Numbered from the stretch's first letter, positions 10,631 to 64,000 are shown. The stretch: DNA of 64,000 bases from Macrostomum lignano (GCA_002269645.1 NIVC01000671.1:420228-484227); one strand, 5' to 3'. Notes: generated by a model not told the origin, from the letters alone. Translations and numbers: made by a program.

Positions 10631-10849
10631 CCAGAAACTTAAATAAGCAAAACAATGTCTGAATATTATTGTGCAAGTAATGCATCGAATATGTTGGCTT
10701 ATTTTTCACTTGGTTCTTTAAACTTTCGGAAATTTAGGCTAAAAACAGTTTCTTATGTCCTTTTCTATCGTATGATTTACCTTACAACTGAGATACATGA
10801 GAAGCAACAAAAAATTCCCAAAAATTTGCATGGACCCATCAGCCCGGCT

Positions 10850-24735: not shown

Positions 24736-24809
24736 ATGGCCTGCGCTGTCGAAAAATGGCGGCCGCCGCCGTCACCGCCGCCGCAGCAGCAGCAGCAGCC
24801 ATGCGAACC

Positions 24810-24840
<31 letters not shown>

Positions 24841-27800
24841 TCCCGAGTCCTGCAGGATATGATGTTCTCCTACACAGCGGACGGAAGCGTGGAGAAGCTG
24901 AAGGCGCTGATGACCCGGCCGGGCGGTCAGCAGCCGGATTTGGATGCGCGCGACCCCGCCACTGGCGACACGCCGCTGCTCATGGCGGCCAGGCGAGGCC
25001 ACCTGGCTACGGTGCGGCTGCTTCTGCAGCACGGAGTCGACGCCACCGTGCTCAGCCGGGACGGCGAGTCAGTGTTGGACATTGGCAACAGTCACGTGCG
25101 CAAGGCCGTCTTGGATAGGCAGCTGACGCCCGATGCGCAGTTTGCGCAGGTAAGGATCTCTGGCGCCAGAACCCAGCTCTGGCTACCCGAATCTCACAGT
25201 CTCACCGCAATCTCACCCGAATCTCATCGTGTCCTACCCGAATCTCATCCAGTCCTACCCGAATCTCATCCTGTCCTACCCGAATCTCATCCTGTCCTAC
25301 CCGAATCTCATCCAGTCCTACCCAAATCTCATCCTGTTCTACGCGAATCTCATCCAGTCCTACCCGAATCTCATCCTGTCCTACCCGAATATCTTCGTGT
25401 CCTACCCGAATATCTTCGTGTCCTACCCGAATCTCATCCAGTCCTACCCGAATCTCATCCAGTCCTACCCGAATCTCATCCTGTCCTACCCGAATCTCAT
25501 CCTGTCCTACCCGAATCTCATCCTGTCCTACCCGAATCTCATCCAGTCCTACCCGAATCTCATATTCTCCTACCCGAATCTCATCCTGTCCTACATGAAT
25601 CTCATCCAGTCCTACCCGAATCTCATATTCTCCTACCCGAATCTCATCCTGTCCTACCCGAATCTCATCCTGTCCTACCCGAATCTCATCCTGTCCTACC
25701 CGAATCTCATCCAGTCCTACCCGAATCTCATCCTGTCCTACCCGAATCTCATATTCTCCTACCCGAATCTCATCCTGTCCTACCCGAATCTCATCCTGTC
25801 CTACCCGAATATCTTCGTGTCCTACCCGAATATCTTCGTGTCCTACCCGAATATCTTCGTGTCCTACCCGAATCTCATCCAGTCCTACCCGAATCTCATC
25901 CAGTCCTACCCGAATCTCATCCAGTCCTACCCGAATCTCATCCAGTCCTACCCGAATCTCATCCAGTCCTACATGAATCTCATCCTGTCCCAGGCCTGCT
26001 GGCAGGGCTGCCTGTTCGGCGTGCGCCACCACCTGCGCCACCTGACGGACGAGGACCTCCGTTCCGCCCGCAACCGCGACGGCTGCCCGGCCGGCATCCT
26101 GCTGGTCCGCGACCTCGAGCGGATCGGCCGACTGGCCGAGCAGTTCCGCATCGACTACCGGCCGGCCGAGGTTCTGCGGCTGCTGCTGGATCGCGGCCTG
26201 GACGTCAACGCCGCCGTAGACGTGCCGACAGGCCGGTCGCCGTTGCACTTCGTTGCCGCGGCTGCTGGCGGCAGCGGCGGAAGCGGCGGCAGCTGGTTGG
26301 GCGCCGCCCGGCACGCCAGGCCGCTCTTGACGGCGCTGGCGCAGGCCGGAGCGAACCTGGAGGCCGCCGACTCCCGGCAGTACACGCCGCTGCACTGCGC
26401 CTGCCTGGCCAAGGCAACCTCCGCGGTCAAGGAGCTGCTCCGCCTCGGCGCCAGCCACCGTGCCATCGGCCTGATGGGCTCCACGCCACTGCACCTCAGC
26501 GCCATGCAGGGCGACGCCGAATCCGCGGCGCTGCTACTTCACGCCGGCGCCGATCCTGGCGCCGCTGACGCCGGCGGCCAGACCCCGGTGGACCTGGCGA
26601 ACTCGGCTCGCATCCGCTGCCTGCTGGAGGGCAGGCCGGCGCCTCCGGATCGGCCACAGCCGGACCGCCCGCGGCGAGTCGGTCGGTCCCGCACGGAGGT
26701 GTCGCCAGCATCTGCCGCAGCTGCATCGGCGGAGTCTCAGCCGCTGCGGTTGCCGAGCATCTTCGGCGAGTCGGACGGCCAGCAGCAGCGCGCGGCAGAA
26801 GCAGCAGCGGCGGCTCGAGCTCGCGGTCGGAGCGCCAGCCCGCCGATGCTGGCCGCGGCGGCCGTTGTATTTCACCGGCACCCGTCCGCTCGCTCCTCGG
26901 ACAGCCCGGCGCCGTCAAATTTCCTGCATCACCGTCGGCTGCCCTGGCAGAGCGGCGGCCCGGCTGCCCCGGCGCGCCAGGACAGCGCGGCGTCCAGCAT
27001 GGACAGCGCCCGAGGGCGCAACAGCTCGCGGACGTGCCTGGAGGACATGGAGGACTCGGCCGCCGCAACGCCGCGCTCCCTGACCCTGTCATCGTCAGTT
27101 TCGGCTCCGTCGTTGATGTCCGCAGCGTTGTCAGCATCGGCAACGTCTCCGGCGGCAACGGCGGCATCGACTGCCGGGCCGCTGAATCCGATCGCCGAGA
27201 CGATCGACGAGGCTGCCGAGGCGACCTCGCCGCCGAGCTCGGCCCGGAGATCTGATGCCAGCCAGCTGCCTCGCCAGTCAGTCGTGCTGGGCCGCCGTGT
27301 TCCGATCGCCAAAGCGCCGCTGCGCATGTCGACCCCAGCCACGGCGGTCAAGCGATCCGGCGGCGGCGGCGGCGCTTCCTCAGTCGTCGCCATGACAACA
27401 AGAAGCAAGACGGAAGCGCAGATTGAATTGTCAAATAGCGTTGAGATACTTGAAGATCCGCAGTCGGTCGGATTGAATGACGCCGTCACCGCGACACCAA
27501 CGGCCACTTCTCCAGCCGCCTCCACAGCCTCTGCCCCAGCTGCCTCCCCAGCCGCTTCACCAGCCTCCGCCCCAGCTTCCGCACAAGACGCTGACGCGCA
27601 ACCGTCAGCTCCTGCCGTATCAGCCAGCAGCAAAGCCGCAGCCAAAGCAACCAAAGCCAAGCCGAGCCCATCGGCAAGCTCGGCAGCTGTCGGCGAAGGC
27701 CAGTCGGCCGTCGGCAAGTCGGCCAGTCAGCCCGGCAAGCAGCAGCAGCAGCGGCAGCCGATCTCAGCGCCGAAGCGTCTCACCGCGGCGCCAGTTCGAA

Positions 27801-30800
27801 AGCGCGGCGCCGGTGGTGCCGTCAACCAGCGAAAAAAGCAGCAACAACCGCAGCAGAAGCAGCAATCTTCTGGAGCCAAGAAGCCGTCGGCAGCCAAGTC
27901 GGTCGCCCTGCCGAAGAACCCGACGGTAATTCAGTCAGACGAGGCTGCCAGCGAGGAGGCGGTGGCGCCGTCACTCGTGGAGCTGTCCGGCGTGGAGCCG
28001 GGGCCCGGCTGGCTGGTGTCGGCCACCGCGGTCGATGGCGGCGGCGGCGTCCAGCTGCTGGCGGCCGCGGCGCCGGCTGGCGCAGCCGGGCTGAGCCGCT
28101 ACCCGGTGCTCAGCTCCATTGGCTCCAACTTATCCGCTGCTGACGACCGAACGCTGCTGTCCGAGATTCCCGAAATGCTGGACGCTGAACCGACGGACGC
28201 CGACGAATGCGATGAGCCGCTGCTGCAGCCACCAGACTCTGTGTTCGTCAGCCACGCCGGCGCTGAGAACGGAACCGCCGGCGCCGTCGGTGGCTCCGAC
28301 CCGCTGAACGACACCATCTCGAGTCTGTCCTCAACCGCCAGCGGACGCGACGGAGACGATGCCGCCTATAGCGACGGGATTTACTGGCGCCAGGGGCCGA
28401 AGATCGGGTCGGGAAGCTTTGGCGTGGTGCGCCAGGGACTCACGGAGGCTGGGCGCATCATCGCGGTCAAGCAGGTGAGCTGCATCATCCCTCATTCTGA
28501 TTAGAAGAAATTGGGGCATTAAATGAGAGTGCACTAAATGACATTAAGAAAGCCAGGGCCCTTGTACGCCACACGTTCTCTAACAATTTATTAGAAAGTG
28601 CAACTTAAAATCCTTACTTTTCTGGTAACTCACAGCAGTTTCAAAGCAAACAAACAAAAAATTATAAATTAAATATAGCCTTATACAATGGTTGATTAGA
28701 GCACATAGATTATTAAAAACATTAAATGATTTTTGCTCCTTTTGCTATTTCGGACAAAATAGTTCAGACAGTTCCGCCAATCAAAATGAAACTACTTCCG
28801 TTCAGTACATATTGTTAAACAGAACATTTATTGGCTCTTACCCCCCCCCCCAGCTTAAACCCTCCAACCGCGCCTTTCCTCACTATCCCCGCCCGGCCCC
28901 AATTTTTATTGCCTTTCTCGGAATTCCAGCCTAGGAGCCATGTACATTTCAGTGGACTGGCCAATGTACATTATTGCTGAACCAATTAGCAAGTTGTTTA
29001 CGCCTGCAAGCTTGGGCTTCTAAACTTATCAAAGTCATTTCGGCTGCCTTTATTCTTATAAAATAGCTTATGTGTTCTTATTTGCTACTGATCTGGAAGT
29101 AGAAAGCTGTTTTACTAAGTATATATGCCTGAGTGGCCCATCCAGTTGTTTTAGTAAAAGTGATACAAACTAACCGATCCCCACTCCGTCAGGTGAGCAT
29201 CGAGCGCGAGGACTCCTCCGTTGAGACGGAACTTCGCCGAATTCGTCAAGAGGTGGAGATTCTGCGCAATCTGCGGCATCGCAACATTGTCCAGCTGCTG
29301 GGCACGCGGTGCGATGGCGACATGTTCTACATCATCATGGAGTTCGTGCCGGGCGGCAGCATCCGGGGACTCCTGGACCGCTACGGCTCGCTGTCCGAGC
29401 GGGTCTGCCGGCGCTACCTGCGGCAGGTGGTCAGCGGGGTGGCCTTCCTGCACGCCAACGGAGTTGTGCACCGCGACATCAAGGTTGGTGGGGCTTCGCG
29501 TGTTTCGGCGGAGTTTAATTTTGTACTTGAAAATACAAAGTTGTGCCTTAGTAAAAATTATCCTATCACACCACCAAATCACCGCACTCAGGGCCACAAC
29601 ATCATGGTGACGGACGCCGGGGTCATCAAGTTGATCGACTTCGGCTGCGCCAAGCGACTGCACGCCACGCAGATGTCTCTGTCTGGCAAGCGCGCTCAGC
29701 AGCAGATGTCGCTAGAGGGCACGCCATACTGGATGGCGCCGGAGGTCGTCCTTGAAGCCGGCCACGGCGCCAAGTCCGACTGTTGGTCCGTCGGCTGCAC
29801 CCTGTTGGAAATGGCGACAACGCGGCCTCCATTCGCCGACATGCCGCCCATGGCAGCCATCTTCGCCATTGGCAACGGCGAGCCGAAGCCGCCGACTCTG
29901 CCGCAAGAATTCTCAGCCGACGCGCACTCCTTCTATGCCGGCTGCTTGGTGCGTGACCCGGCGCTCCGGCCTGCCGCCGAGGACCTGGCTAAGCACCGGT
30001 TCCTGAGGGCGCGCTCGCGGTGAGTTGTACTTGCATGGGCTGGATCCAATTTGGGCTGGAGCCAGTTTGGGGGTTGTGCTTGGGCTGGAGCCATTTTGGG
30101 GGTTGTGCTTGTGCTGGAGCCATTTTGGGGGTTGTGCTTGTGCTGGAGCCATTTTGGGGGTTGTGCTTGTGCTGGAGCCAGTTTACGGGTTGGGCTTGGG
30201 CTGGAGCCAGTTTGGGGGTTGTGCTTGTGCTCAAGCCAGTTTAGGGGTTGGGCTTGGGCTGGAGCCAGTTTGGGGGGGGGGGTAATTGTGCTTGGGCTGG
30301 AGCCAGTTTGGGGTTGTGCTTGGGCTGGAGCCATTTTGGGGGTTGTGCTTGGGCTGGAGCCAGTTTGGGGGTTGTGCTTGGGCTGGAGCCAGTTTGGGGG
30401 TTGTGCTTGGGCTGGAGCCAGTTTGGGGGTTGTGCTTGGGCTGGAGCCAGTTTGGGGGTTGTGCTTGTGCTGGAGCCAGTTTGGGGGTTGTGCTTGGGCT
30501 GGAGCCAGTTTGGGGGTTGTGCTTGGGCTGGAGCCAGTTTGGGGGTTGTGCTTGTGCTGGAGCCAGTTTGGGATTGTGCTTGGGCTGGAGCCAGTTTACG
30601 GGTTGGGCTTGAGCTGGAGCCAGTTTGGGGGGGGGTAATTGTGCTTGGGCTGGAGCCAGTTTGGGGTTGTGCTTGTGCTGGAGCCAGTTTGGGGGTTGTG
30701 CTTGTGCTGGAGCCAGTGTGGGGTTGTGCTTGGGCTGGAGCCAGTTTACGGGTTGGGCTTGGGCTGGAGCCAGTTTGGGGGGGGGGGTAATTGTGCTTGG

Positions 30801-42074: not shown

Positions 42075-43320
42075 AAGTTGAACTGCTGAATCGTGTCAAG
42101 TCAGCGCGCCAGACGCCCTTCAGGTTCCTTAGTCTGCAGCAGGCCCTTTAGTGGCTGATGATCGGTGAACGCGGTGAAGTGCTTCACGTTACACACGTAC
42201 GACCTGAAATGTTTTAAGGCTCCATACTAAGGCGAGCAGTTCTCTGTTAGTAGCTGAATATAGTTCCTTTCTGCCTTATTTAGGGTCCTTGAGGCGAAAG
42301 CAACCGACAGTTCCGCATCTCCGTGCGCCTGATTGAGAACCGCACAGATTGCAAATGCGCTTGCATCGCAACTCAGGATGAAGGGCCGGCTAAAATCTGC
42401 TGGTAGCCTAAGCACGGGAGCCTGGCAGATCCTTTCCTTTAGTTCGGTGAAAGCATTCTCACACTCATCCGTCCAGGTGAAGCCGGTCTTTTGCGTAGCT
42501 GCATGCAGAGGCGCAGCTATCCTGCTAAGTCGTGGATGAATCACCGGTAAAATCCCAGCATGCCGATGAATCGCCTCACTTCCTCAGCTGAGCTCGGCGT
42601 CTGAATCTTCGATAAAGCTTCCACTTTACTGGGGACTGGCCTCCTTTGCTGCTGACAAGATGGCCCAGGTACTTGACACTACGGTATGCAAACACGGACT
42701 TCTCCTTGTTCAGCTTGTTCACCTTGTTTCAGCGCTTTGAAACCGTTCAAAAACCCGGCGTAGACTGACTAGATGCTGGTCAAAGCTCTTGCTGAACACT
42801 ATTAGATCATCCATGTAGACCAGGACCTCCTCCCACGTGAGGCCAGGCATGATCAGCTCCATTAGCCGTTGGAACGTAGCCGGCGAGTTGCACATTCCAA
42901 ATCCCATTTTCTTGAACTGAATGAATCCTCTGGTAGAGTAAAACGCCATCTTGTAGCGGTCTGCTTCCTTAACTTCCACTTTATTAAAACACTGCTTGCA
43001 ATCGATTGTCGTAAACCAAGAGCAGCCTAAGAGCGCGTCCATGGACTGTTGCAGGTGTGGGAGCTGATTTAGGCGTCCCTTGACCGTAGCGGCATTCAGC
43101 TGGTGCCAGTCAGTGCAGATGCGGATGTCTCCGTTCTTCTTCTTGACTATATTATGCACGATCAAATTTCTGGCCCATGGAGAGCTCGACGGCTCAATGA
43201 TGTCGTGCGAAAGCATCTGGCCAATATTGTCGTTGCCTCGGTCCCTCAGCAGCAGGGGAAGCGGTCGCTGGCGCTGCCTGAATGGCCGTGCCTCGAGCTT
43301 CGGCAGGAGTTCCTAAGAAA
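42075..43320 (-). mobile_element. Ty3/Gypsy pol fragment (RT plus RNase H), frameshifted
   Basis: IIEPSSSPWA, KKKNGDIRICTDW..LN, FTTID..., FGMCNSPATFQRLM, YMDD, CDAS, VAFASRTLNKAERNY, FTDHQPL. Confidence 0.93.
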
Positions 43321-47904: not shown

Positions 47905-48615
47905 AGTCTGCTAGGAATGAAGGCGCGGAGCTGCTGGGTGTCTGATGGGAATGAAGGCGCGGGGCTGCTGGGTGTCTGATGGGAATGAAGGCGCGGGGCT
48001 GCTGGGTGTCTGATGGGAATGAAGGCGCGGGGCTGCTGGGTGTCTGATGGGAATGAAGGCTCGGGGCTGCTGGGTGTCTGATGGGAATGAAGGCGCGGGG
48101 CTGCTGGGTGTCTGATGGGAATGAAGGCACGGGGCTGCTGGGTGTCTGATGGGAATGAAGGCGCGGGGCTGCTGGGTGTCTGATGGGAATGAAGGCACGG
48201 GGCTGCTGGGTGTCTGATGGGAATGAAGGCTCGGGGCTGCTGGGTGTCTGATGGGAATGAAGGCGCGGGGCTGCTGTGTCTGATGGGAATGAAGGCGCGG
48301 GGCTGCTGGGTGTCTGATGGGAATGAAGGCGCGGGGCTGCTGGGTGTCTGATGGGAATGAAGGCGCGGGGCTGCTGGGTGTCTGATGGGAATGAAGGCAC
48401 GGGGCTGCTGGGTGTCTGATGGGAATGAAGGCACGGGGCTGCTGGGTGTCTGATGGGAATGAAGGCGCGGGGCTGCTGTGTCTGGTGGGAATGAAGGCAC
48501 GGGGCTGCTGTGTCTGATGGGAATGAAGGCGCGGGGCTGCTGTGTCTGATGGGAATGAAGGCGCGGGGCTGCTGGGTGTCTGATGGGAATGAAGGCACGG
48601 GGCTGCTGGGTGTCT
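47905..48615. repeat. 34-bp minisatellite (TGTCTGATGGGAATGAAGGCGCGGGGCTGCTGGG)n
   Basis: About 21 units. Confidence 0.95.
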
Positions 48616-50589: not shown

Positions 50590-50877
50590 CTACAGCTTGA
50601 TGCAGCTGATGATCTGGCTGGCGCTGCTGCCGCACTTGCTGGCCAGGCAGGCAGCCAGTTCGTTGATGTTGTTGCCATTGGAGACGAAGCAGACCAGCAG
50701 GCTGGTCACGATGCAGGTCACGGATGTGATGCCGTTCTGCTGCAAGCAGATGGTGTCCAATCGGAGCACGGGAACGACCTCGTGAATGATGTCGTTCACG
50801 ACCTCGTTCTTCTGCTCCGGAGTGTAGGCGGCGGCGGCAAAGGCCACGAGAGCGAACAGGCAGAGGAGCTTGTACAT
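50590..50877 (-). CDS. Small secreted 6-Cys protein, copy 1 (95 aa, most diverged intact copy)
   Basis: MYKLLCLFALVAFAAAA signal peptide followed by YTPEQKNEVV... and C-x10-C-x7-C-x13-C-x4-C-x9-C; intronless; paralogous to copies 2-5. Confidence 0.9.
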   Translation of the reverse strand: MYKLLCLFALVAFAAAAYTPEQKNEVVNDIIHEVVPVLRLDTICLQQNGITSVTCIVTSLLVCFVSNGNNINELAACLASKCGSSASQIISCIKL

Positions 50878-51479
50878 GGCTGCTGAGCTGGGTGCTTTGG
50901 TGCTGATGGCACAGGCTTGGGTCCGTCGCTCAGTCAGCCTTTGCCCCCGAATGCATATTGAAATACTCCTAAATGTCTGAATAAGTCGCAGGTGACGCAG
51001 TTTTGATTGACCCCCCCACTCCACCGCAAATTGTTGGTCCGCCCACGGCCTGTCGGGTCAGACCGCTTGGCTGCTAAGTGACGGTGAGACACTGCCAGCT
51101 TTTCTACTGACGCCCTTTGTCATGTTTTTTTTTCAAGTCAGCTGTCAAGATAATGCAGCTCGACTGTCAGCGTTCGCTTGCCGACTGCTAGTCGAATTTA
51201 GTAGTCGCATATTTTCTAAGCAGATTTTTCGACACTTTAAGAGCTTCATTCCGCAATTTGATCACAAGGGGATCCACAAGCATGTAAGGGTGCATTTCTG
51301 TGACTACCAAAGTCTAATTATCTATTGTAGTGTGTTGTGAGCTTTTTTGTCTTGAGGATCGGGGTTATCTTTGTCTACTTTGTACACACAAGGTTTTATT
51401 GGTCAGGGAGACATAATCCCGTTATTCCAGCGTCTTTAAGGGGCTTCTAGTGTTTATAGAGTTTTTACATGCTATTTAC

Positions 51480-51960
51480 GCCAATATCTCTCGACTAACG
51501 CCAGTATCTCTAGACAAGCGCCAATGTCTCTAGATTAGCCCCAATGTTTTTAGACTAGCGCCAGTGTCTCTCGACTAACGCCAATATCTCTAGATACGTG
51601 CCAGTATGTCTAGACAAGTGCCAATGTCTCTAGAGTAGCCCCAATGTTTTTAGCCTAGCACCAGTGTCTCTAGCCTAGCACCAGTGTCTCTAGCCTAGCA
51701 CCAGTGTCTCTAGCCTAGCACCAGTGTCTCTAGCCTAGCACCAGTGTCTCTAGCCTAGCACCAGTGTCTCTAGCCTAGCACCAGTGTCTCTAGCCTAGCA
51801 CCAGTGTCTCTAGCCTAGCACCAGTGTCTCTAGCCTAGCACCAGTGTCTCTAGCCTAGCACCAGTGTCTCTAGCCTAGCACCAGTGTCTCTAGACTAGCG
51901 CCAGTTTCTCTAGACAGGCGCCAATGTCTCTAGCTTAGCGTAGGTATCTCTAGACAAGCG
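51480..51960. repeat. 20-bp minisatellite (CCAGTGTCTCTAGCCTAGCA)n with a perfect core at ~51650-51895
   Basis: Read directly; degenerate flanks. Confidence 0.93.
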
Positions 51961-52325
51961 CCGATGTCTGTAGATTAGCGCTCAGGGACGTCGTCACCAG
52001 GGGAGACAGGGGGATATGCCAATGCTTTTTATCCCAGGACCACTAGCAAAAGAGGCTAGTGTTCTGCTATAGCCTCAGAACACAGGCTAGCAGAAATCAA
52101 TAGTGAAATCAAGTGAAACCAAGAGTTTTCCTTCGGGCGACAAAATAAGTTTCGCCCCCCACGCCATAAAAATCCATGGAGGCACCCCTGCCAGCGCCAG
52201 TGTCCCTGAAAATAAGCGGCACTGTGTATATACTGGAATGCCACGGGGTGGGCACCTGGATTCGCTACCTGTCCGAGTATACGAGCTGTACAAATGCACA
52301 GTGCAAACCATTCACTGCTCTTCAG

Positions 52326-54595
52326 TCCTCAATCAGCGCCACAGCTGCTCATTGGCTGCTTCTGCCGCTGCCTGCGCGGCGGGAGCAGCAGCAGCCGAAT
52401 CACGATCCGAGTTCGAATCCCGGCGGCGCCGATATCGGCCGTCTTCTGCTAGCCGTGGAGCCGCGCCGCTGTGGCCTGCTGGCCTTCGCCGAGTCCGGCC
52501 GGTCAGTGCTGGCCGAGGCGGCCGCGCCACCAGAAAACCCCGACGAAATGCTGGCGACGGCGCGCGACCTGCTTCAACGCCCGATGACTCCGGGTGAAGA
52601 GGCTGCCGCGCCGGCCGAGGACGTGACGGTGTCTGTTTCGACCGATCGTCTGCGCCATCGGCGCTGGTTGGCCCGCGCCGGGCGCGAACTCCTGACCGTC
52701 GGGCTCGGCTGCATCGAGTCCGTGTCGCCCGACTTTGCCTCGGCCACTCTGATCAGCCCGGAGGGCGTCCGGCTTCGCGTTGCCGCCGATGTTGGCGACT
52801 GTCCCAATTTCTGCCTCGTCGACTCGGAGCTGCCAGTTCCGATCCCCGGCGGCGGTGGCGGTGACGGCAGCCTGCGGCGCCTGTTCGACCGGTTCGCCGG
52901 GGCGTCGCGGTCGCTGCTGCCGCACTGGGAGCTGCTGGAGCAGCTGGACAGCCGGCTGGTCGTGCTTGAGCCGCGGCCGGCCCAGCGTAGACGCTCGCTT
53001 CACCGACGGGTGCTGCTGGCCGAGTGAGTGGCTTTTGCTGAGCAACTGGCGACTCTAGCTGAGTTTTTTAATCAAATATTTGCATTTTTGCACTACACAG
53101 CTCCGCGGACTTCTTGAGCTTTAGGTAGGTATAAAATTGTTGCAGTTTTGATAGGATCATAATTTTGTTCCTTTAGAGGTTTTTGATGGTGCTGATTTCA
53201 AATTTGAGCTTCGTTTTTTCGTAGCTTCAAACCAACCACCGGGGCATAGGGAATGGGGGGTTTTAGGGTGGGGAGAATCTTCATGGGGATTGATTTTATG
53301 TACATAAACTTCAACAGAAGCATGGGAGTCTATTGTAGATTAGGTAGATAAATTCGGAGACTGAGGGATGGGCTTAAATAAAAAATTCGGCAAGCCATCA
53401 AACACCTCCATGAAGAAAAAATGACAATCCTATCAAAACTAATTGACATCAGCAGCTGTAGTTAACTTTTGAATGGAGACAAGGCAGATTAGTAAAAGTT
53501 AGTATAGGTAAACAAGTAAAGAATGTACGGCTAGTCGGCACAACAATGAGAGAACGACAGCAAATCAAAAAGCGGGAGGTAAGGGGCGGGTGGCGAACCC
53601 TGAGTCAGCATATTTAAATTAGAATAGACACTATTTTTATCGGAGTTAAAATTTGAACCCTCTAAATGTTTTTATTAGAATAATTTCATCAAATTTTGGA
53701 AATTTTTTACAGTTGAAAGATATGATTCCAAAAAAACTTCAAATTTCAAACACAAAATTCTCCGAACCTGCTTATATCAAATTATCACTAATTACATAGG
53801 AGATTAACAAATTAAGCTCCTGTTAACTCTGAAGGTAATTTTTGCAGTTTTTTGCTCTAAGACTCTGGCGAAAAAATCGGAAGTATTTTATGTACCTAAA
53901 GCTCAAGAAGTCCAGGTCCGCTTCCAATCTCCAACATGCAATCGGATTTAGCAGAGGCTGTTTTGTCTATGGCAAATCCTTTTGTTGAAGATTGCAACTG
54001 CCATCTTCATGAGGTCGGCCCCAGGTGTGCTCAGATACTGAATACCCTAAATAGCCGCCATCGCGCACTAAAACAAAAACTACATCATATTGATGCGGAG
54101 GCAGCTCCAACTCCCCGCAGCCGCGCCAGCAGCCTGCTGATCAGGCTGGACCCCGACGCCAGCCCGGCTGCCCTGCCATCCGTCAGTGCCGCAGGTCCGG
54201 CTGCCGAGGCCATCGAAGTGGCCGTGACCGCCAACTCCGCCGCCTGGAAAGCAGGCGCGGACGTCGCGGACTTTGTGTCCAACCTGAGAGCTCTGCTGGG
54301 CGGCTCCGCCTTGCTTGCCGAGCCTTCAGCCGTCGAGACCGAGCAGCCGGTGGCGGGCGATGCTGGCGTCGAGGCCGCTACCGAGGATGTCGACTGCGGC
54401 ATCTGCTACGCTGACTGCTCCGCCGATGGTCCCGACTGCGTCACTTGCGAGCGCTGCCGGCGTCGCTACCACCGCAGCTGCGCAGTGGAGTGGCTGCGCG
54501 GCCTGCCGGACACTCGGCAGGGCTTCAACCGACTGCACGGCTGCTGCCCCTACTGCAGGGCGAGGCTGTGCGTGCTGCAGGACTGTCAGGATTGA
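52326..54595 (+). CDS. FANCL: E3 ubiquitin ligase FANCL; exons 52326(?)-53023, 54121-54595
   Basis: URD-like LFDRFAGASRSLLPHWELLEQLDSRLVVLEP...RRVLL and the FANCL RING DCGICY...C..C...YH..C..EWLRGL...RQGFNRL.G.CPYC. Phase-2 junction GA|gtgagt...ccgcag|C. 5' end uncertain (acceptor at 52325 or ATG at 52176). Confidence 0.9.
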
Positions 54596-54893
54596 GCCGC
54601 CAGCTGTCATCAATAAGTCAGCCAAGTAGTCCCGCTTTGCCATTCACTGCAAATCTTGTAGTAAACAAAAAGTGTCGAAGACAAGCCATGAATTTTATGC
54701 ATTTGAACCCTGTGTCCGAGTTCGAGTTCCCACTTGCACTTTAAATTCTATCGCGTGCGACAAAATAAAAATATAAAGTCAATTAAACAGTGAGTTTTGA
54801 TAGTTTAATTAATATTTTAGCTGGCGCTTTCAACTGTTCCAGATTGCGCTCAGCAACCAAATTGTATTTCTATGCATTGATAGAAAAATGCAT

Positions 54894-55181
54894 TTACAGC
54901 TTGATGCAGCTGAGAATCTGGATGGCGCTGCCGCCGCACTTGTTGGCCAGGCAGCCGGCCAGCTGGCTGATGTTGGTGCCGTGGGCGAAGTAGCAGGAGG
55001 CCAGGTTGGAGATCAGGCAGTTCACGGAGCCGATGCCGTTCTGCAGCAGGCAGTTGGTGTCGATGCTGAGCACGGGAACGACCTCGTGAATGATGTCGTT
55101 CACGACCTCGTTCTTCTGCTCCGGAGTGTAGGCGGCGGCGGCGAAGGCCACGAGAGCGAACAGGCAGACGACGTTGTACAT
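54894..55181 (-). CDS. Small secreted 6-Cys protein, copy 2 (95 aa), convergent with FANCL
   Basis: MYNVVCLFALVAFAAAA-YTPEQ...SCIKL; same Cys spacing. Confidence 0.9.
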   Translation of the reverse strand: MYNVVCLFALVAFAAAAYTPEQKNEVVNDIIHEVVPVLSIDTNCLLQNGIGSVNCLISNLASCYFAHGTNISQLAGCLANKCGGSAIQILSCIKL

Positions 55182-55540
55182 GGCTGCTGAGCTGGGTGCT
55201 TTGGTTGCTGGCTTCTTGAGACTGGCTGCTGGGTTGAGTTGCTGATTGGGTCTCGGGCTCGGTCGCTGGGCTCTCATTTATGGTGCCGCTGGTGGCGCTA
55301 CAGGTGACGCGGTCTCGGACAGCCGCACCGCGCGCAGTCCGTTAAAGCTGTCAGAACTGTCACAAAGTTTTTAACCGGTTTATTTTGTCTGCTGTTTAGT
55401 GGTTTCCAATATCTCATCTCTTATCATGCGTTTTGGTATTTGACAGTCTTGTTGCCTGCGCTGCTGTCAGATTATCAGCGCATGCTGCTTAATTCACAAA
55501 TATTTTGCACTGTCGGCGGTTTTCCGAAACCAAGTTTTTA

Positions 55541-56640
55541 GGAGGGGTGTGCAATAAGTTTCTGGATGTGCGAAGTCTGAAATAGTTGGAGAGCAACTGA
55601 CAGTCATATTTTTTTAAGGTACTCTCCATAAGAATCTATGCACCATTGCATCCTCTCATACCACTTATTGAAGCAGCTGGACCACTGAACTTGGCACCCC
55701 CTTGACATGCTTGATGAAGGCCTCGACTGCAGCTTCCGGCGATGAATAGCGACTGCCTTGCATCTTCTGCTCGGTTTGCGGAAACACAAAGAACTCGCGC
55801 GGGGCCAGGTCTGTGCTGTAGGGTGGATAGCGGAGCTCTTGAATGTGTTCTCCAGCCAGAAATTCGACCACTTGCCTGGACTTGTGGGCGGGGCGTTGTG
55901 ATGAAGAAGCACACCCCGAGCTCGAGTCCTTAAACGGCAATTGGAGAGAGCACTCAGCACTTCTGACAGGCAGTAGTCGGTACGCCAGTTGCCAGTGACT
56001 GTGCGCTGCTTTCGTCACAAAAACGGCCAACATCTGCTTTGCCACGCTGCCCCACGTGGGGCACCTTTAACTGGTGTTCACTGTGTCGACTGCTGCGTGT
56101 GGTCTCTGGGTCAAAACTGTAGATCCAGGATTCTTCACCACTGACGATTTCCCAGATCCAGTTTGAGCGGCCACCATCGAATCTGTCGAGCATGGCATGG
56201 CACCAAGCCACCCGAGCCTCCTTTTGCTCCTCTGTCAGGTGATGAGGCACCCAGCGTGCAGAAATCTTGCTCAGGTTGAGCCTTGAGTGCAGAATCGTGC
56301 GGATGGCTGCCGATGAGATGCCCACTTCTGCCTCCATCTGGGCCACAGTTACCCTGGCATCATTCTTAGTCATGGCCTGAATAGCAGCACTCATATTCTC
56401 ATCCCTTGCTGCGGAGGTGGGCCAGCCGCTGCAGTCTTCATCATCCAGACTCCGTCGGCTATGTCGAACTTCGGCAAACCACTCAAAAACTGTGGTAGTG
56501 GAAGGTACTTTATTGCCAAAAACTGCCTAAAGTTCCTCAAAGCTCTTTTGCTGTCTTAAACCTCTTGTAGCCATAGTAAATAATTATTTCTCAGTGCATG
56601 TTGTCGGCGCTTGTGAATGCAGAATCTAAAAATAATTTCG
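55541..56640 (-). mobile_element. Degenerate mariner transposon
   Basis: HTH-region VFEWF..., SARWVPHHL, IVSGEESW, YSTDLAPREF and C-terminal KW..R...C....GEY, with stops and frameshifts. TA-GGAGGGGTGTGCAATAAGTT mariner-type end at 55539-55560; the other TIR was not found. Confidence 0.9.
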
Positions 56641-57520
56641 CAACTTTGTCAAGTAGTTTGGCTATACTTTGGAGACATACATATGGTAGCATAAAGGACT
56701 TAGTTTAAAATTTCTAGTGAATCGTTCCAAAGATGTTCCAAAGTTCGTCCACCCCATGTCTGGGAGGGCATCGCAAACCCGAAAAATTACAACTCTAAAA
56801 AGTGCTTTCCATATCATAAACCGGAAACATCATAACTCCGAATGCTAGCAACGCCTAACGCTATTTTGGTTTTCGGAGCTATGATATTTCGGGTTTGTGA
56901 TCTAGCTTTCTTCGGGAAGCATGGTATTTTATCAACGATGTGATGCACGCGGGCAGGTATACGAGCCGTGGACTTTAGAGCGCTTCAGACTAGCTGTGAT
57001 TGGACATGCACTGATTTCTTTGTTAGGTAGCCATTATGCCGTGAAATGCCTTGACGCGGTCTCTATCTCTGGTCTATGCCACAAGCCTTTAATTGTCAAG
57101 CTCGATAACAATCGTGTAATCAGGGAGGTGTAATCAGTTTTATTATTATTACTATTCTGGCTCGATAAATCAATCAGATTGAACATTTGGAATTTTCTGC
57201 AAAATAATTTTAAAACTAGATCTAGATACTTCTCGCCGCCATCAAGTTACGCGCTGTCAAATTGAACAAATCGGATAATGTGCAAAGCAACGAAAAAGTA
57301 CATAGCTACAAGGAATAACAACACACATAAATCGCCTAATTTGATAGCGCAGCGTGGATGAGCCTGTTATGTTCTTGCGGGAATTATTTCTGAAGCAACA
57401 AGCTATACAAGTACTTGTTTCCCTGATTTTTTAAGTTTTTTAGTTTCTCTCTATCGCGACGGTTATTGTCACCTTTCTCATGGTGGTTCGTCTTCTGCTT
57501 GTAGTTTTCTGCCCGCAGAC

Positions 57521-57967
57521 CACAGATGCTAAACTAACTGGATGGGCCACTCAGCCATAAATACTTAGTAAAACAGCTTTCTACTTTCAGTTCAGTAGCA
57601 AAGAAGAATATATAAGCTATTTATAAAAATAAAGGCAGCTGAAATGACTGATAAGTTTAGAATCCCAAGCCTGCAGGCGTAAGCAACTTGCTAATTGGTT
57701 CAGCAGTAATGTACATTAGCCAGTCCACTGAAGTGTACATGGCAGCTTTAGGCTGAAATTCCGAGAAAGGCAATAAAAATTGGGGCGGGGCGGGGGGGGG
57801 GGTTGGTGTCGTGTGGAAAGGCGCGGTTGGAGGGTTTAAGCTGGTGGGTAAGACCCAATAAACGAGCTTTGGAATTCAAATGCTTCTGTTTAACTTACTA
57901 CTGAACTGAAAGTAGCCTACACGCAAATGTGCTGAGTGGCCCATCCAGTCATTCTATAGTATCTGTG
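57521..57967 (+). mobile_element. CACAG-TIR MITE, full length (447 bp)
   Basis: ~35-bp TIRs; flanks CCGCAGAC/CCGCAAAC (7/8 match, an 8-bp TSD). Confidence 0.88.
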
Positions 57968-58595
57968 CCGCAAACTTACAGCTAGTTCTCCGCTACATGC
58001 TGCAAGTTGCCCTTCAGATTTATTCGCTTCAATCAGTCTCGATCGCACAATCGCTTGTATTCAAGGACGACTTAAGAACACAGGACATCTTGGGTGAATA
58101 TTGACAATTGGGTGAAGATGACCAAATGTTAGCGGTGACATGGAATTGCCCTAGGAGAGAATTTTATCAGCAGCATCAACTGCAAGCATTTTCGCCAGCA
58201 GTATCTGACAAAGCAATTGTCAAAGCCTTGTTTTCTGCAATCGTCAGTGATAAAGCGCGTAGGCTAGGACCACTGGAACAATTACGTTACTTTAGTAGTC
58301 CTTGAGCACTAGTTATCCAGGAGCAGTAATAGCAGATCGAGGGTGTTATTGCTGTAGCAGCTGGTTGATAAATCCGAGAACACCAATAAATTAATTTGTT
58401 TTAACTAAAGACACCCTTTGATCAGACAATTCTTTAACTTATCTGGGGATATAAAGTTTCCAGTTTTCTTAACTTTGTTATACCAACAAGTCTAAACAAA
58501 AAATGCACTCAGAAAAGAAATTCAGTTATTAGTAAAGTAAGATCGTTGTTAATATTGTACTTTAAGTTTATTTTATAGCCTCAATACCGAAACAT

Positions 58596-58883
58596 TTACA
58601 GCTTGATGCAGCTGAGAATCTGGATGGCGCTGCCGCCGCACTTGTTGGCCAGGCAGCCGGCCAGCTGGCTGATGTTGGTGCCGTGGGCGAAGTAGCAGGT
58701 CGCCAGGTTGGAGATCAGGCAGTTCACGGAGCTGATGCCGTTCTGCTTCAAGCAGTTGGTGTCGATGCTGATCACGGGAACGACCTCGTGAATGATGTCG
58801 TTCACGACCTCGTTCTTCTGCTCCGGAGTGTAGGCGGCGGCGGCGAAGGCCACGAGAGCGAACAGACAGACGAGCTTGTACAT
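58596..58883 (-). CDS. Small secreted 6-Cys protein, copy 3 (95 aa)
   Basis: MYKLVCLFALVAFAAAA-YTPEQ...SCIKL; AATAAA on the minus strand ~24 nt after the stop. Confidence 0.9.
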   Translation of the reverse strand: MYKLVCLFALVAFAAAAYTPEQKNEVVNDIIHEVVPVISIDTNCLKQNGISSVNCLISNLATCYFAHGTNISQLAGCLANKCGGSAIQILSCIKL

Positions 58884-59289
58884 GGCTGCTGAGCTGGGTG
58901 CTTTGGTTGCTGGCTTCTTGAGACTGGCTGCTGGGTTGAGTTGCTGATTGGGTCTCGGGCTCGGTCGCTGGGCTCTCATTTATGGTGCCGCTGGTGGCGC
59001 TGCAGGTGACGCGGTCTCGGACTGCAGCACCGCGCGCAATCCGTTAAAGCTGTCAGAACTGTCACAGAAGGCTCTGCAAGTAGCGTTTCCTTCCCTTATC
59101 TGTGCGTATGAGCGTAGTATAGAGCTAATTTACACGCTTCCTAATTAGCATACTCATGCAGCGGAACAACAGTCTGGGACACTGTCGTGACACGGCCGCG
59201 CCACAGCCTGTCAGACCTGTCACCAGCGATATGGGCCAGTTTGGCCAACTAAGGTTTTCCACTAATTTCACGGCCAGGGCGCGTAAGGT

Positions 59290-59900
59290 CAGCATCAGGC
59301 AGGAGAGTCAAACCTCGGGATGCTGCGAGACGTGGCACTGGGTGACCAAAAAGCCATCCTCTTCCTGCAGAGTCCTTCGGGGCACGTAGGTTGGAAACTC
59401 TGCAGTGGGTCCATCGGATGCTTGGAAGGCCATAGAACTGCTGTACACGTCCATGACTGCCCGCACAAGCAGAGGTGGCACTCCATGCTGAGCGAGCAGC
59501 CAGGCTATGGCCAGCCGGCTGACAGAATCAAAGGCTTTGCGGAAGTCGATGATGATTGCCGCCACCTGCTCAGTAGTTGATCTGCCAGAAAAAAACCACT
59601 CTGAAAAGCTGGCATGCGCGAGCTGAGCGCTGGGAGCAGGCGCGGTTTCTCAGCACGGCGTTCAGCGCTTTTGGGAGATTGCAATCCCGCGCCGGTTGTC
59701 TAGTCTGGTGGAGTTGCCTTTCTTGGGGATGGAGATGATCTTTGAAGTCTTCCACTGCTTGGTGGCAGAGGCGGACTCGTCCCCACCAAGGCGGTTGAGC
59801 AGGCGGTTGGTCACGGTGCCAAGCAGCTCAGGCAACTTCAGCACTCTCGGGGCGGATTCCGTCAACTCCAGACGGAGCGTCCGCTCGCATTGCCTCCAGG
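59290..59900 (-). mobile_element. Non-LTR (LINE, RTE/CR1-like) reverse transcriptase fragment
   Basis: WKTSKIISIPKKG...NRRGIA, IDFRKAFDSVSR, GVPPLLVRAV; broken frames. Confidence 0.88.
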
Positions 59901-60597
59901 ACCTTAGCGACCTCGTCCATGATGATTGGAGTGAAGTAGAAGGACTCGGCTGGGGCGGACGTCAGGCCGGAGGCTGGTGGGAGAAGCAGCAATTTGGATG
60001 GCCATGCAAAGGCCTCGGTGAAAAATTTGGGCGATGGCTATCCCAGCTGAGGGACGCTTGATGGGGGCTGAGTTTACTCAATTTCCTGTCATTATAGCGA
60101 TTTACAGGGTGACATTTGCGCTGTAACAGTTTAGCCAAAATGGGAGAAAAATAATTCCGATTTCTATGGACAAGAATGCAGTATCTACATTAATGCAATC
60201 ACTTCAATAAAATAGTAAGTGAGAAAACTTCGAACACGCTCGTAAAAATGAGAAAGCAATGCTGTTTCCTTTTGTAGAAGTTATATATCTTCTGAAATAA
60301 CTTTTGGAATCCTGATTTTAAAATTGGGAATGCTTAATTACAGTCGAGTCTTTTTATGCTCAAAATAACCCAAACAAAACAACCCGAACGTTTCTGTTTG
60401 ATCCTTAAGAAAATGCCATTAAGACAACCATTTGTATAGTTATACTGATTTCCAAAGACATTATTTCCCTTTTCCAGGATTCTATTTGGTTAGATTCAAC
60501 ATTGCCCCGAAAATTGTCCATAAAACATGTCCATGTTTTATGTAGAAGATTAAACATGCCTTTCGAGGGAGCTATTCGTATAAATCACAAAAGCCGA

Positions 60598-61265
60598 AGG
60601 CTGTCTCAATAATACAAGCGCACATTATGAAGTGTGTCTCAATAACACAAGCGCACATTATGAAATGTGTCTCAGTGATACAAGCGCACATTATGAAGTG
60701 TGTCTCAATAACACAAGCGCACATTATGAAATGTGTCTCAGTGATACAAGCGCACATTATGAAGTGTGTCTCAATAACACAAGCGCACATTATGAAGTGT
60801 GTCTCAGTGATACAAGCGCACATTATGAAGTGTGTCTCAATAACACAAGCGCACATTATGAAGTGTGTCTCAGTGATACAAGCGCACATTATGAAGTGTG
60901 TCTCAATAACACAAGCGCACATTATGAAGTGTGTCTCAATAACACTAGTGCACATTATGAAGTGTGTCTCAGTGATACAAGCGCACATTATGAAGTGTGT
61001 CTCAATAACACAAGCGCACATTATGAAGTGTGTCTCAATAACACAAGCGCACATTATGAAGTGTGTCTCAATAATACAAGCGCACATTATGAAGTGTGTC
61101 TCAGTGACACAAGCGCACATTATGAAGTGTGTCTCAGTGACACAAGCGCACATTATGAAGTGTGTCTCAGTGACACAAGCGCACATTATGAAGTGTGTCT
61201 CAGTGACACAAGCGCACATTATGAAGTGTGTCTCAGTGACACAAGCGCACATTATGAAGTGTGTC
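60598..61265. repeat. 33-bp minisatellite (ACAAGCGCACATTATGAAGTGTGTCTCAGTGAT)n
   Basis: About 20 units with alternating variants. Confidence 0.95.
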
Positions 61266-61603
61266 TCTTGGCTTGGCGCATATAAAACTTGGCGCACAAG
61301 ATGGAAAATTTACGACAAGAAGATAAAATGATCAATAAATATACTTCGCCAAAGTCCTGCTTTTTCAAAGGAATGCATCTCATTGTTGCACCTTTTTTAC
61401 CCGAGCTGTCGGAGGGCTTTATTAATGGTGTTGAATTTGTCGGTCAATAGAACCCTAATAGTTCAAGCGGTCGCAAAAACAGCTGAATCATCTTGCAAGA
61501 ACATTCGAGAAGACATTAAGCTGAACCGCGACTGCAGGACAGTCAGTCAATTTGAAGCGATAAGAACTAGCTGCCTCTGGCAGGGCGTGGGCGGCGTGAC
61601 AGG

Positions 61604-61740
61604 CCGGGACCGCGTCACCTGCAGCGGCACCAGCGGCACCATAAATGAGAGCCCAGCGACCGAGCCCGAGACCCAATCAGCAACTCAACCCAGCAGCCAG
61701 TCTCAAGAAGCCAGCAACCAAAGCACCCAGCTCAGCAGCC
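61604..61740 (+). promoter_or_regulatory. Shared promoter/5'UTR of the 6-Cys family, with TATA-like CATAAAT at 61640-61646
   Basis: Near-identical upstream of copies 2, 3 and 4; the TATA-like box lies ~95 nt before the signal-peptide ATG. Confidence 0.55.
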
Positions 61741-62028
61741 ATGTACAACGTCGTCTGCCTGTTCGCTCTCGTGGCCTTCGCCGCCGCCGCCTACACTCCG
61801 GAGCAGAAGAACGAGGTCGTGAACGACATCATTCACGAAGTCGTTCCCGTGATCAGCATCGACACCAACTGCCTGCTGCAGAACGGCATCGACTCCGTGA
61901 ACTGCCTGATCTCCAACCTGGCCTCCTGCTACTTCGCCCACGGCACCAACATCAGCCAGCTGGCCGGCTGCCTGGCCAACAAGTGCGGCGGCAGCGCCAT
62001 CCAGATCCTCAGCTGCATCAAGCTGTAA
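61741..62028 (+). CDS. Small secreted 6-Cys protein, copy 4 (95 aa, inverted relative to copies 1-3)
   Basis: MYNVVCLFALVAFAAAA-YTPEQ...SCIKL. Confidence 0.9.
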   Translation: MYNVVCLFALVAFAAAAYTPEQKNEVVNDIIHEVVPVISIDTNCLLQNGIDSVNCLISNLASCYFAHGTNISQLAGCLANKCGGSAIQILSCIKL

Positions 62029-62350
62029 ATGCAGTTTTCTATCAATGCATAGAAATACAATTCGGTTGCTGAGCGCAATCTGGAACAGTGGAAAGCGCCA
62101 GCTTAAATATTAATTAAACTATCAAAACTCACTGTTTAATTGACTTTATATTTTTATTTAGTCGCACGCGATAGAATTTAAAGTGCAAGTGGGAACTCGA
62201 ACTCGGACACAGGGTTCAAATGCATAAAATTCATGGCTTGTCTTCGACACTTTTTGTTTACTACAAGATTTGCAGTGAATGGCAAAGCGGACTACTTGGC
62301 TGACTTATTGATGACAGCTGGCGGCTCAATCCTGACAGTCCTGCAGCACG
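62029..62350. repeat. Inverted duplicate of 54571-54893 (copy-2 3' flank plus FANCL 3' end)
   Basis: Near-identical reverse complement, e.g. GGCGGCTCAATCCTGACAGTCCTGCAGCACG. Confidence 0.93.
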
Positions 62351-62493
62351 GCATCGACTCCGTGACGTGCCTGGTGAGCAACCTGATCACCTGCTTCTTC
62401 TCCAGCGGCACCAACATCAGCAAGCTGGCCACCTGCCTGGCCAGCAAGTGCGGCGGCAACGCCATCCAGATCATCAGCTGCATCAAGCTGTAA
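62351..62493 (+). pseudogene. 5'-truncated/chimeric 6-Cys family copy 5
   Basis: GIDSVTCLVSNLITCFFSSGTNISKLATCLASKCGGNAIQIISCIKL*; lacks the signal peptide and the first Cys; fused to the duplicated segment. Confidence 0.85.
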
Positions 62494-63864: not shown

Positions 63865-64000
63865 AATTAAAAGTGGCTGAAAAAGTGGTCGAGAGGTGGC
63901 CGGTTGTAAGTGGCTGGTGAGGGACTGAAAGTGTCCTTCCTTCAGCCACTAAAAGTGACCCTCTTTTATGGCCACTTTTTAGCATTTTTTCAGCCCTTTT
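63865..64000. repeat. AAAGTGGC/GCCACTTTT motif array in both orientations (foldback-like, truncated by window end)
   Basis: AAAAGTGGCTGAAAAAGTGG... followed by ...GGCCACTTTTTAGC...TTTCAGCC. Confidence 0.55.

Follow-up and report, generated by a model that had tools for sequence, protein, structure and literature searches.

A local cluster of genes for a small, putatively secreted six-cysteine protein family in the flatworm Macrostomum lignano

What is encoded by a cluster of short, related open reading frames (ORFs) lying between positions 50590 and 62493 of a 64,000-nucleotide stretch of Macrostomum lignano DNA (GCA_002269645.1, NIVC01000671.1:420228-484227) is the question addressed here. 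This whole stretch, hereafter the window, constitutes the final 64 kb of contig C671, which stops at window position 64000. An earlier note on the same DNA had proposed a locally expanded family of small secreted six-cysteine (Cys) proteins, composed of four intact ORFs of 95 amino acids (aa) and one truncated copy. The genes are real and active members of a multigene family, because purifying selection, invariance of the Cys, a conserved promoter and transcription all speak for them. No curated family, characterised homologue or fold match was found for their product, though the genes were already deposited as hypothetical proteins.

An ORF scan of the window with the standard genetic code recovered the five copies where they had been placed. 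Copy 1 (50590-50877, minus strand) represents a divergent lineage and displayed 72% identity with copy 2. Copies 2 (54894-55181, minus strand), 3 (58596-58883, minus strand) and 4 (61741-62028, plus strand) are all of type A1, copy 4 being an inverted recent duplicate of copy 2. The coding sequence was uninterrupted in each of these four intact genes, which specify precursors of 95 aa. Copy 5 (62350-62493, inside an ORF extending from 62233 to 62493, plus strand) is an A2-type remnant reduced to its last 47 codons (GIDSV...SCIKL). It is a pseudogene, without signal peptide, N-terminal helix and first Cys (C1) because the end of a duplicated unit cuts it at 62350.

The precursor starts with MY..CLFALVAFAAAA|YT. 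Its n-region is short, a hydrophobic core follows, and positions -3 and -1 are Ala; under the von Heijne rule this pattern reads as a signal peptide, with cleavage after residue 17 (Ala17). In copy 2 this would leave residues 1-17 as signal peptide and a mature protein of 78 aa, the predicted mature products being 8.2-8.35 kDa in mass with an isoelectric point (pI) of 5.0-6.0. In the alignment, segment YTPEQKNEVVNDIIHEVVPV, which forms the acidic mature N-terminus, was identical in four out of four intact copies. It precedes a Cys domain with spacings x10, x7, x13, x4 and x9 (mature residues 27, 38, 46, 60, 65 and 75). The three elements announced by the earlier note, signal peptide, invariant acidic segment and six-Cys framework, were thus borne out by the alignment and the von Heijne reading, and so was the residue following NGI, which is T, G, S, D and D across the five copies. 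A claimed concentration of variation around C1-C3 was not: copies 2 to 4 differed at few sites, and the differences of copy 1 run across the whole Cys domain. Charged residues made up 10-13% of the mature protein, with only three out of 58 residues charged in the Cys domain. The grand average of hydropathy (GRAVY) was +0.33 to +0.50 and the hydrophobic fraction 0.49, versus 0.47 for the true saposin domains of the same genome. The protein is devoid of repetitive or low-complexity sequence.

The inter-Cys segments had been described as helical in appearance, and AlphaFold2 likewise predicted them as helices. The model of copy 2, computed from a 14-sequence family alignment, reached a predicted local distance difference test score (pLDDT) of 87.2 and a predicted template-modelling score (pTM) of 0.71. 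Helices were predicted at residues 3-17, 25-30, 36-50, 54-65 and 69-73; apart from a short bridge pairing residues 22-23 with 76-77, the model was all-helical. The model predicts a bundle of five helices for the mature protein with good confidence, an acidic amphipathic N-terminal helix packing on a four-helix core that carries the six Cys. The loop between helices 3 and 4 displayed an N-x-S sequon in A-type members, copy 1 excepted.

The family is considerably larger than the cluster. A six-frame search of the 764-Mb M. lignano assembly (5269 contigs) gave 66 matches, of which one displayed an internal stop; this number overstates the independent loci, contigs C3085 and C4760 being near-identical to part of the window and C2785 being a counterpart of the region. 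Together with the duplicates in the cluster, these matches agree with the proposed local expansion of a small secreted six-Cys family. At least six subfamilies could be distinguished: the 95-aa A type with three clades, types B to E (35-48% identity) and a 5-Cys fragment type. All six Cys were invariant across subfamilies, down to 35% identity, and so were three further features, namely (S/Y)(I/V)D ahead of C1, Gly behind it and CG(G) behind C5. Two public gene models of this family look like annotation artefacts: P0009 (979 aa) joins a D-subfamily member to apparent ligand-gated ion-channel and C-type-lectin-like sequence, and P0003 (119 aa) is without eight genome-encoded residues (NDIIHEVV).

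The closest database proteins were hypothetical proteins of M. lignano. A 67% identical protein was found in two Logan read sets and probably stems from a second Macrostomum species; in the tree, the A-type genes of M. lignano clustered together to the exclusion of this gene. When 1.84 billion representative proteins were searched exhaustively with the family profile, ten matches had an expectation value (E) of 0.001 or below. Five were M. lignano proteins or gene models, three were unrelated repeat or very long proteins matched over short stretches only, and the remaining two were unnamed short proteins with eight Cys (E 3e-4 and 8e-4). Word-indexed and profile searches together provided no credible relative beyond M. 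lignano, the 67% identical protein and these two borderline sequences. The additional Cys pair of the 8-Cys relatives lies four residues after C1 and four before C6, a placement suggestive of adjacent first and last core helices. One of them (L043, Logan ERR14788473) is encoded on an AT-rich contig of eukaryote-like character, which also displays a TATA box and an AATAAA signal. The other, P0014 (L044/L045, ENA metagenome scaffolds), lies in GC-rich DNA beside a DAO-type oxidoreductase gene, and no match to it was found in bacterial and archaeal genomes or in JGI metagenomes. The model of P0012, the most distant relative and one of the 8-Cys proteins, displayed at lower confidence (pLDDT 71.5) the same four-helix Cys core with a different N-terminus. 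If the 8-Cys proteins are true homologues, the family would be older than Macrostomum; as far as the sequences collected here indicate, it is found almost only in that genus.

Constraint on the protein was distributed unequally. Over codons 18-40, which encode the N-terminal helix, the proportion of replacement differences (pN) was 0.03-0.09 and that of silent differences (pS) 0.37-0.41 when copy 2 was compared with one paralogue and with the gene of the other species (Fisher p 0.001-0.009). The N-terminal helix is under strong purifying selection. Between subtypes, the Cys domain displayed a pN of 0.135-0.157 and a pS of 0.026-0.078 (Fisher p 0.08-0.4): the Cys themselves never change, and the residues between them change at a replacement rate equal to or above the silent one. 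GC content at third codon positions was 0.90-0.94, versus a regional GC content of 45-55%.

Conservation extended to the apparent promoter. That of copy 2 (55276-55310, minus strand), about 100 nt upstream of the ATG, combines GCGTCACCTG at 55310-55301 with a TATA-like CATAAAT at 55282-55276. GCGTCACCTG, which consists of a half-site resembling a cAMP response element combined with an E-box, was invariant in copies 1 to 4 and in one paralogue and precedes a CATAAAT or TATAAAT box by about 20 nt; on contig L041 of the other species (420-452) the motif reads GCGTCAGCTG. Copy 1 retained GCGTCACCTG and displayed no clear TATA box. An ATTAAA at 54804-54809 (minus strand), about 85 nt past the stop of copy 2, is a candidate polyadenylation signal as judged from its sequence only. 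NCBI gene models exist on contig C671 for the window copies, several of which start 57-66 nt upstream of the ATG (60 nt in P0032, the model of copy 1). The start of partial gene models lies about 30 nt past the TATA box, as would be expected of transcript-derived models. An in-frame upstream extension (MRAQRPSP..., giving 127-aa frames in three copies) was rejected as coding sequence, as it covers the TATA-like box and the 5' untranslated region.

Transcription could be followed through a close paralogue. P0015, 81% identical to copy 2, corresponds to BOX15_Mlig000320g4 (Mlig000320.g4). Table S8 of Brand et al. 2020 (PMC7336406) re-analyses the positional RNA-seq of Arbore 2015, in which worms were cut at successive levels so as to isolate testis, ovary and tail regions. 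In the part of that table considered here, Mlig000320.g3 (3790/7938/5935/3873 reads in fragments A, B, C and D) and Mlig000320.g4 (3806/7806/5528/3575 reads) are 288-nt transcripts attributed to positional class 0,0,0, "Non-Specific", most neighbouring entries having roughly 50-300 reads (PMC7336406). Among 61 transcripts of Table S8 that were compared, a single one (2.7 kb) exceeded these counts and most displayed 0-300 reads (PMC7336406). Given the successive cutting levels and the high counts in fragment A, expression therefore takes place anterior to the testes as well. In the data on social groups both transcripts had a baseMean of 919-1807 and were not differentially expressed (adjusted p 0.33-0.85; PMC7336406, Tables S8-S10, in the portions considered), and the entries of both in that part of Table S8 carry no germline, neoblast or in situ annotation (PMC7336406). 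As far as a paralogue can represent it, transcription of the family is very strong in all parts of the body and is specific to neither gonads nor prostate. The family did not appear in the supplementary files searched of a prostate in situ and seminal-fluid screen. The gene identifiers occurred in no main text searched, nor in the supplements searched of an ageing and an aneuploidy paper, Brand et al. 2020 being the sole source in which they were encountered, and the literature search found no single-cell atlas or in situ pattern for the family. An absence of transcription of all copies, which the earlier note had put forward as evidence against its proposal, is not what these data display. 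An origin of the ORFs as chance frames or as transposon sequence was ruled out by expression, selection and the invariance of the Cys.

Comparison with known families was largely negative, in agreement with the claim that the protein matches no characterised family. With all subfamilies as queries, Pfam gave no match at curated cut-offs and only sub-threshold noise, and the PDB sequence-profile search nothing meaningful (best, SecB, E 0.38). Foldseek, run with two models against PDB and against the viral BFVD, returned no match at E<1, the best in PDB having an E of 2.6 and a template-modelling (TM) score of at most 0.37. Neither these searches nor the one among 1.84 billion proteins thus provided a characterised relative. 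Defensin, knottin, Kunitz and three-finger proteins were rejected on the grounds of the model, all-helical bar its two-residue bridge, and of the absence of Pfam and PDB matches.

Two groups of lipid-binding proteins offer likenesses. Plant non-specific lipid-transfer proteins (nsLTPs; 7-9 kDa) are secreted all-helical disulfide bundles with a hydrophobic interior, encoded by large multigene families, abundant and active in defence or lipid handling. The flatworm family similarly seems to consist of small, secreted, helical, disulfide-stapled bundles, multigenic and very abundant at the transcript level. However, nsLTPs belong to another kingdom, are basic and display eight Cys including CC and CxC motifs, in contrast to six Cys and neither motif here, and no sequence or fold match to them was obtained in Pfam or PDB. 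Cestode 8-kDa hydrophobic-ligand-binding proteins (Echinococcus antigen B/Taeniidae antigen) are flatworm-specific, helical, multigenic, extremely abundant and lipid-binding. Restriction to flatworms, a size of about 8 kDa, helices, a signal peptide, multiple genes and abundance are shared features, whereas the cestode proteins are not disulfide-rich and form oligomeric lipoproteins. No match to the Pfam Taeniidae antigen family was found, nor any profile link among the 1.84 billion proteins.

We favour, at a probability of roughly 0.4, an abundant somatic secreted protein acting on lipids or membranes, either as a surface defence effector or as a carrier of hydrophobic ligands. Low charge, GRAVY and a saposin-like hydrophobic fraction hint at lipids or membranes, and a pN at or above pS in the Cys domain together with a cluster of mixed lineages is suggestive of effector-like evolution. 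Export would take place in a somatic secretory tissue, be it the gut or the epidermal or rhabdite glands, where the precursor would pass into the secretory pathway and be cleaved after Ala17. The six Cys would form three disulfides stapling the bundle. Outside the cell, the mature protein may bind lipids or membranes much as saposin-like proteins, amoebapores or plant lipid-transfer proteins do, its likeliest role being that of an abundant mucosal defence protein or hydrophobic-ligand carrier. The conserved N-terminal helix might serve a step common to all members, such as folding, sorting, oligomerisation or membrane docking, and the fast-changing surfaces between the Cys might tune target specificity; a large number of genes would increase dosage as well as variety. 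If membrane-active, the protein would be nearer to amoebapore or saposin types than to classical cationic peptides, because it is hydrophobic with a pI of 5-6 and not cationic. A more ambitious proposition, which appears doubtful, is that the family represents a new disulfide-stapled helical fold, ranks among the most abundant secretions of Macrostomum and acts as a flatworm-specific membrane-active immune effector or extracellular lipid carrier, and that ancient 8-Cys relatives in other eukaryotes announce a wider, overlooked superfamily.

Several points weigh against the lipid- or membrane-directed role. Most antimicrobial peptides are cationic, which this protein is not, and its hydrophobic composition is also compatible with self-assembly in secretory granules. 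The replacement excess in the Cys domain is suggestive and not significant (p 0.08-0.4), and may reflect relaxed constraint. The read counts belong to a paralogue, not to the window copies, and may pool near-identical copies. The signal peptide is a reading by the von Heijne rule, and the disulfides are presumed. The negative fold comparison rests on Foldseek against PDB, for which small helical proteins are hard cases.

Self-assembly leads to the main rival, which nonetheless seems unlikely, namely a protein that structures or packs a somatic secretion (rhabdite or mucus matrix), produced in bulk by epidermal glands, self-assembling through its hydrophobic, weakly charged surface and without specific target. 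Very high, body-wide transcript abundance reaching in front of the testes, numerous gene copies, low charge and high hydrophobicity speak for such a product, as does a Cys domain evolving near the neutral rate, which would be expected where only bulk properties matter. However, the compact and confidently modelled fold, the invariant Cys and the conserved helix indicate more constraint than is usual for bulk matrix proteins, and the absence of repetitive or low-complexity sequence also speaks against it.

A second alternative, suggested by the databases themselves, is that of a highly diverged saposin-like protein (SAPLIP) inserting into membranes like amoebapores or NK-lysin. P0005, P0007 and P0015 bear the automatic UniProt/UniRef name "Saposin B-type domain-containing protein". 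With SAPLIPs (saposins, amoebapores, NK-lysin, caenopores) the family shares about 78 aa, six Cys, about five helices, a signal peptide, an acidic to neutral pI, nearly half hydrophobic residues, a frequently multicopy organisation and strong expression, which in SAPLIPs is that of gut or defence cells. An alignment by eye could bring four of its six Cys into line with the C3-C6 spacings of saposins. The saposin fold is a five-helix folded leaf with nested disulfides C1-C6, C2-C5 and C3-C4. The model of copy 2 displays five predicted helices.

The Cys framework itself is different: SAPLIPs display C-x2/3-C-x~27-C-x~10-C-x~24-C-x5-C (x2, x27, x10, x24 and x5 in the saposins of this genome), in contrast to C-x10-C-x7-C-x13-C-x4-C-x9-C in the family, of which the third gap is 11-13 in other subfamilies and the first helix is without Cys. 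Neither SapB_1 (PF05184) nor SapB_2 (PF03489) matched any of nine family members at E<=1. PF05184 detected 32 true saposin domains elsewhere in the M. lignano genome and none at the family loci. Alignment by hhalign of the family profile (A3) with that of the genome's saposin domains (A4) gave a probability of 0.08% and an E of 0.63 over one aligned column, and no SAPLIP structure was included in the Foldseek PDB matches. Because the Pfam, Cys-framework and hhalign tests failed, the family was not filed under SAPLIP; the automatic "saposin" label is unsupported, a very remote derivation being conceivable, and membership of a diverged SAPLIP branch seems quite improbable.

Distinctly improbable, too, is a secreted signal or water-borne pheromone, with identity residing in variable surfaces. 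Aplysia attractin and the Euplotes Er pheromones are small helical proteins with six Cys, three disulfides and variable surfaces, and the flatworm family offers several paralogous types of a similarly stapled helical protein with variable inter-Cys surfaces. Those pheromones, however, are 38-58 aa long, hydrophilic and differently spaced in their Cys, the flatworm family being much more hydrophobic than known water-borne pheromones. In addition, expression of the family was constitutive and massive, far above the level expected of a signal, and remained unchanged whether worms lived isolated, paired or in octets. A seminal-fluid or reproductive protein under sexual conflict, one of the roles envisaged in the earlier note, is largely refuted and scarcely credible: small size, secretion, fast evolution and lineage restriction are common to many seminal-fluid proteins, but the positional class is not tail-, testis- or ovary-specific, fragment A is already high, social plasticity and germline annotation are lacking in the tables considered, and a search of supplementary files of the prostate in situ screen did not recover the family.

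The anatomy of the cluster indicates how the copies arose. Copies 2, 3 and 4 are recent duplicates with silent divergences (dS) of 0.03-0.08 (0.03 between copies 2 and 4), and copy 1 occupied a long separate branch of the tree. The duplicated units are short (0.44-0.76 kb), consisting of promoter, coding sequence and little 3' flank. The longest, of 760 nt (61591-62350, plus strand), is an inverted copy of 54571-55331 comprising promoter, copy 4, 3' flank and the end of a FANCL-like gene, of which it holds the final 25 nt of coding sequence; its right-hand end truncates copy 5, and the resulting inverted repeat (I1, copies 2/4) is 98% complementary. Homology of copy 5 to the family starts at 62350, the preceding 39 codons of its ORF being an inverted 3' fragment of the FANCL gene. 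The inverted FANCL coding end and 3' flank at 62290-62352 constitute the false 5' part of this ORF. Birth-and-death evolution, as supposed in the earlier note, fits a cluster in which three lineages occur together with a broken copy. The phrase "among transposons" of the same note held for one degenerate mariner-like element, the spacers containing several minisatellites as well.

Related contigs displayed much the same arrangement. C3085 and C4760 are 99.9% identical to and collinear with window positions 50.8-64 kb, and look as if the region had been assembled redundantly or duplicated very recently. Both carry the copy 5 remnant; C3085 also contains a coding sequence identical to copy 2 and, about 3 kb past the equivalent of the window end, a sixth copy (103538-103822). 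C2785, 93-97% identical, is the counterpart of the region with a different copy set.

Between copies 1 and 2 lies a gene that is not a family member, a FANCL-like RING E3 ligase gene (52176-54595, plus strand) with several exons, the last of which encodes RING/FANCL_C (Pfam E 3e-15). It is convergent with copy 2, about 300 nt away, and adjoins the cluster on C3085 and C2785 too, which indicates conserved gene order. The mariner/Tc1-like transposase remnant (55665-56394, minus strand) is located between copies 2 and 3; its frame is broken and its match to HTH_Tnp_Tc3_2 (E 5e-5) is below the Pfam cut-off. Minisatellites with units of 34, 20 and 33 nt were found at 48006-48583, 51441-52040 and 60464-61390, respectively. 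The 33-nt array displayed long repetitive pseudo-ORFs on both strands (e.g. MCACVTETHFI...), which are not genes. Further upstream, the window contains what appear, as judged by translated sequence alone, to be a PP2A B56-like regulatory subunit gene (10643-13732), an ankyrin-repeat and protein-kinase gene (24496-30023) and a reverse-transcriptase fragment (42719-43312). Tandem repeats of great length, rich in proline or serine, are interspersed with these, as is a stretch at 70% GC.

The family is not categorically new in kind, lineage-restricted secreted Cys-rich families being common in animal genomes. It is an example of lineage-restricted secreted-protein evolution that combines a frozen N-terminal helix, a fast Cys-stapled core and sub-kilobase duplication units. 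For the databases, it calls for a correction of the automatic "saposin" label attached to some members. M. lignano is a model for regeneration, ageing, bioadhesion and sexual selection, and the short, strong and conserved promoter of the family could serve transgenesis. The products of this family are among the most strongly transcribed secreted products of the worm, without name, family or fold match, and, in a transparent, transgenic animal amenable to RNA interference, they may provide an accessible entry to flatworm mucosal defence or lipid handling.

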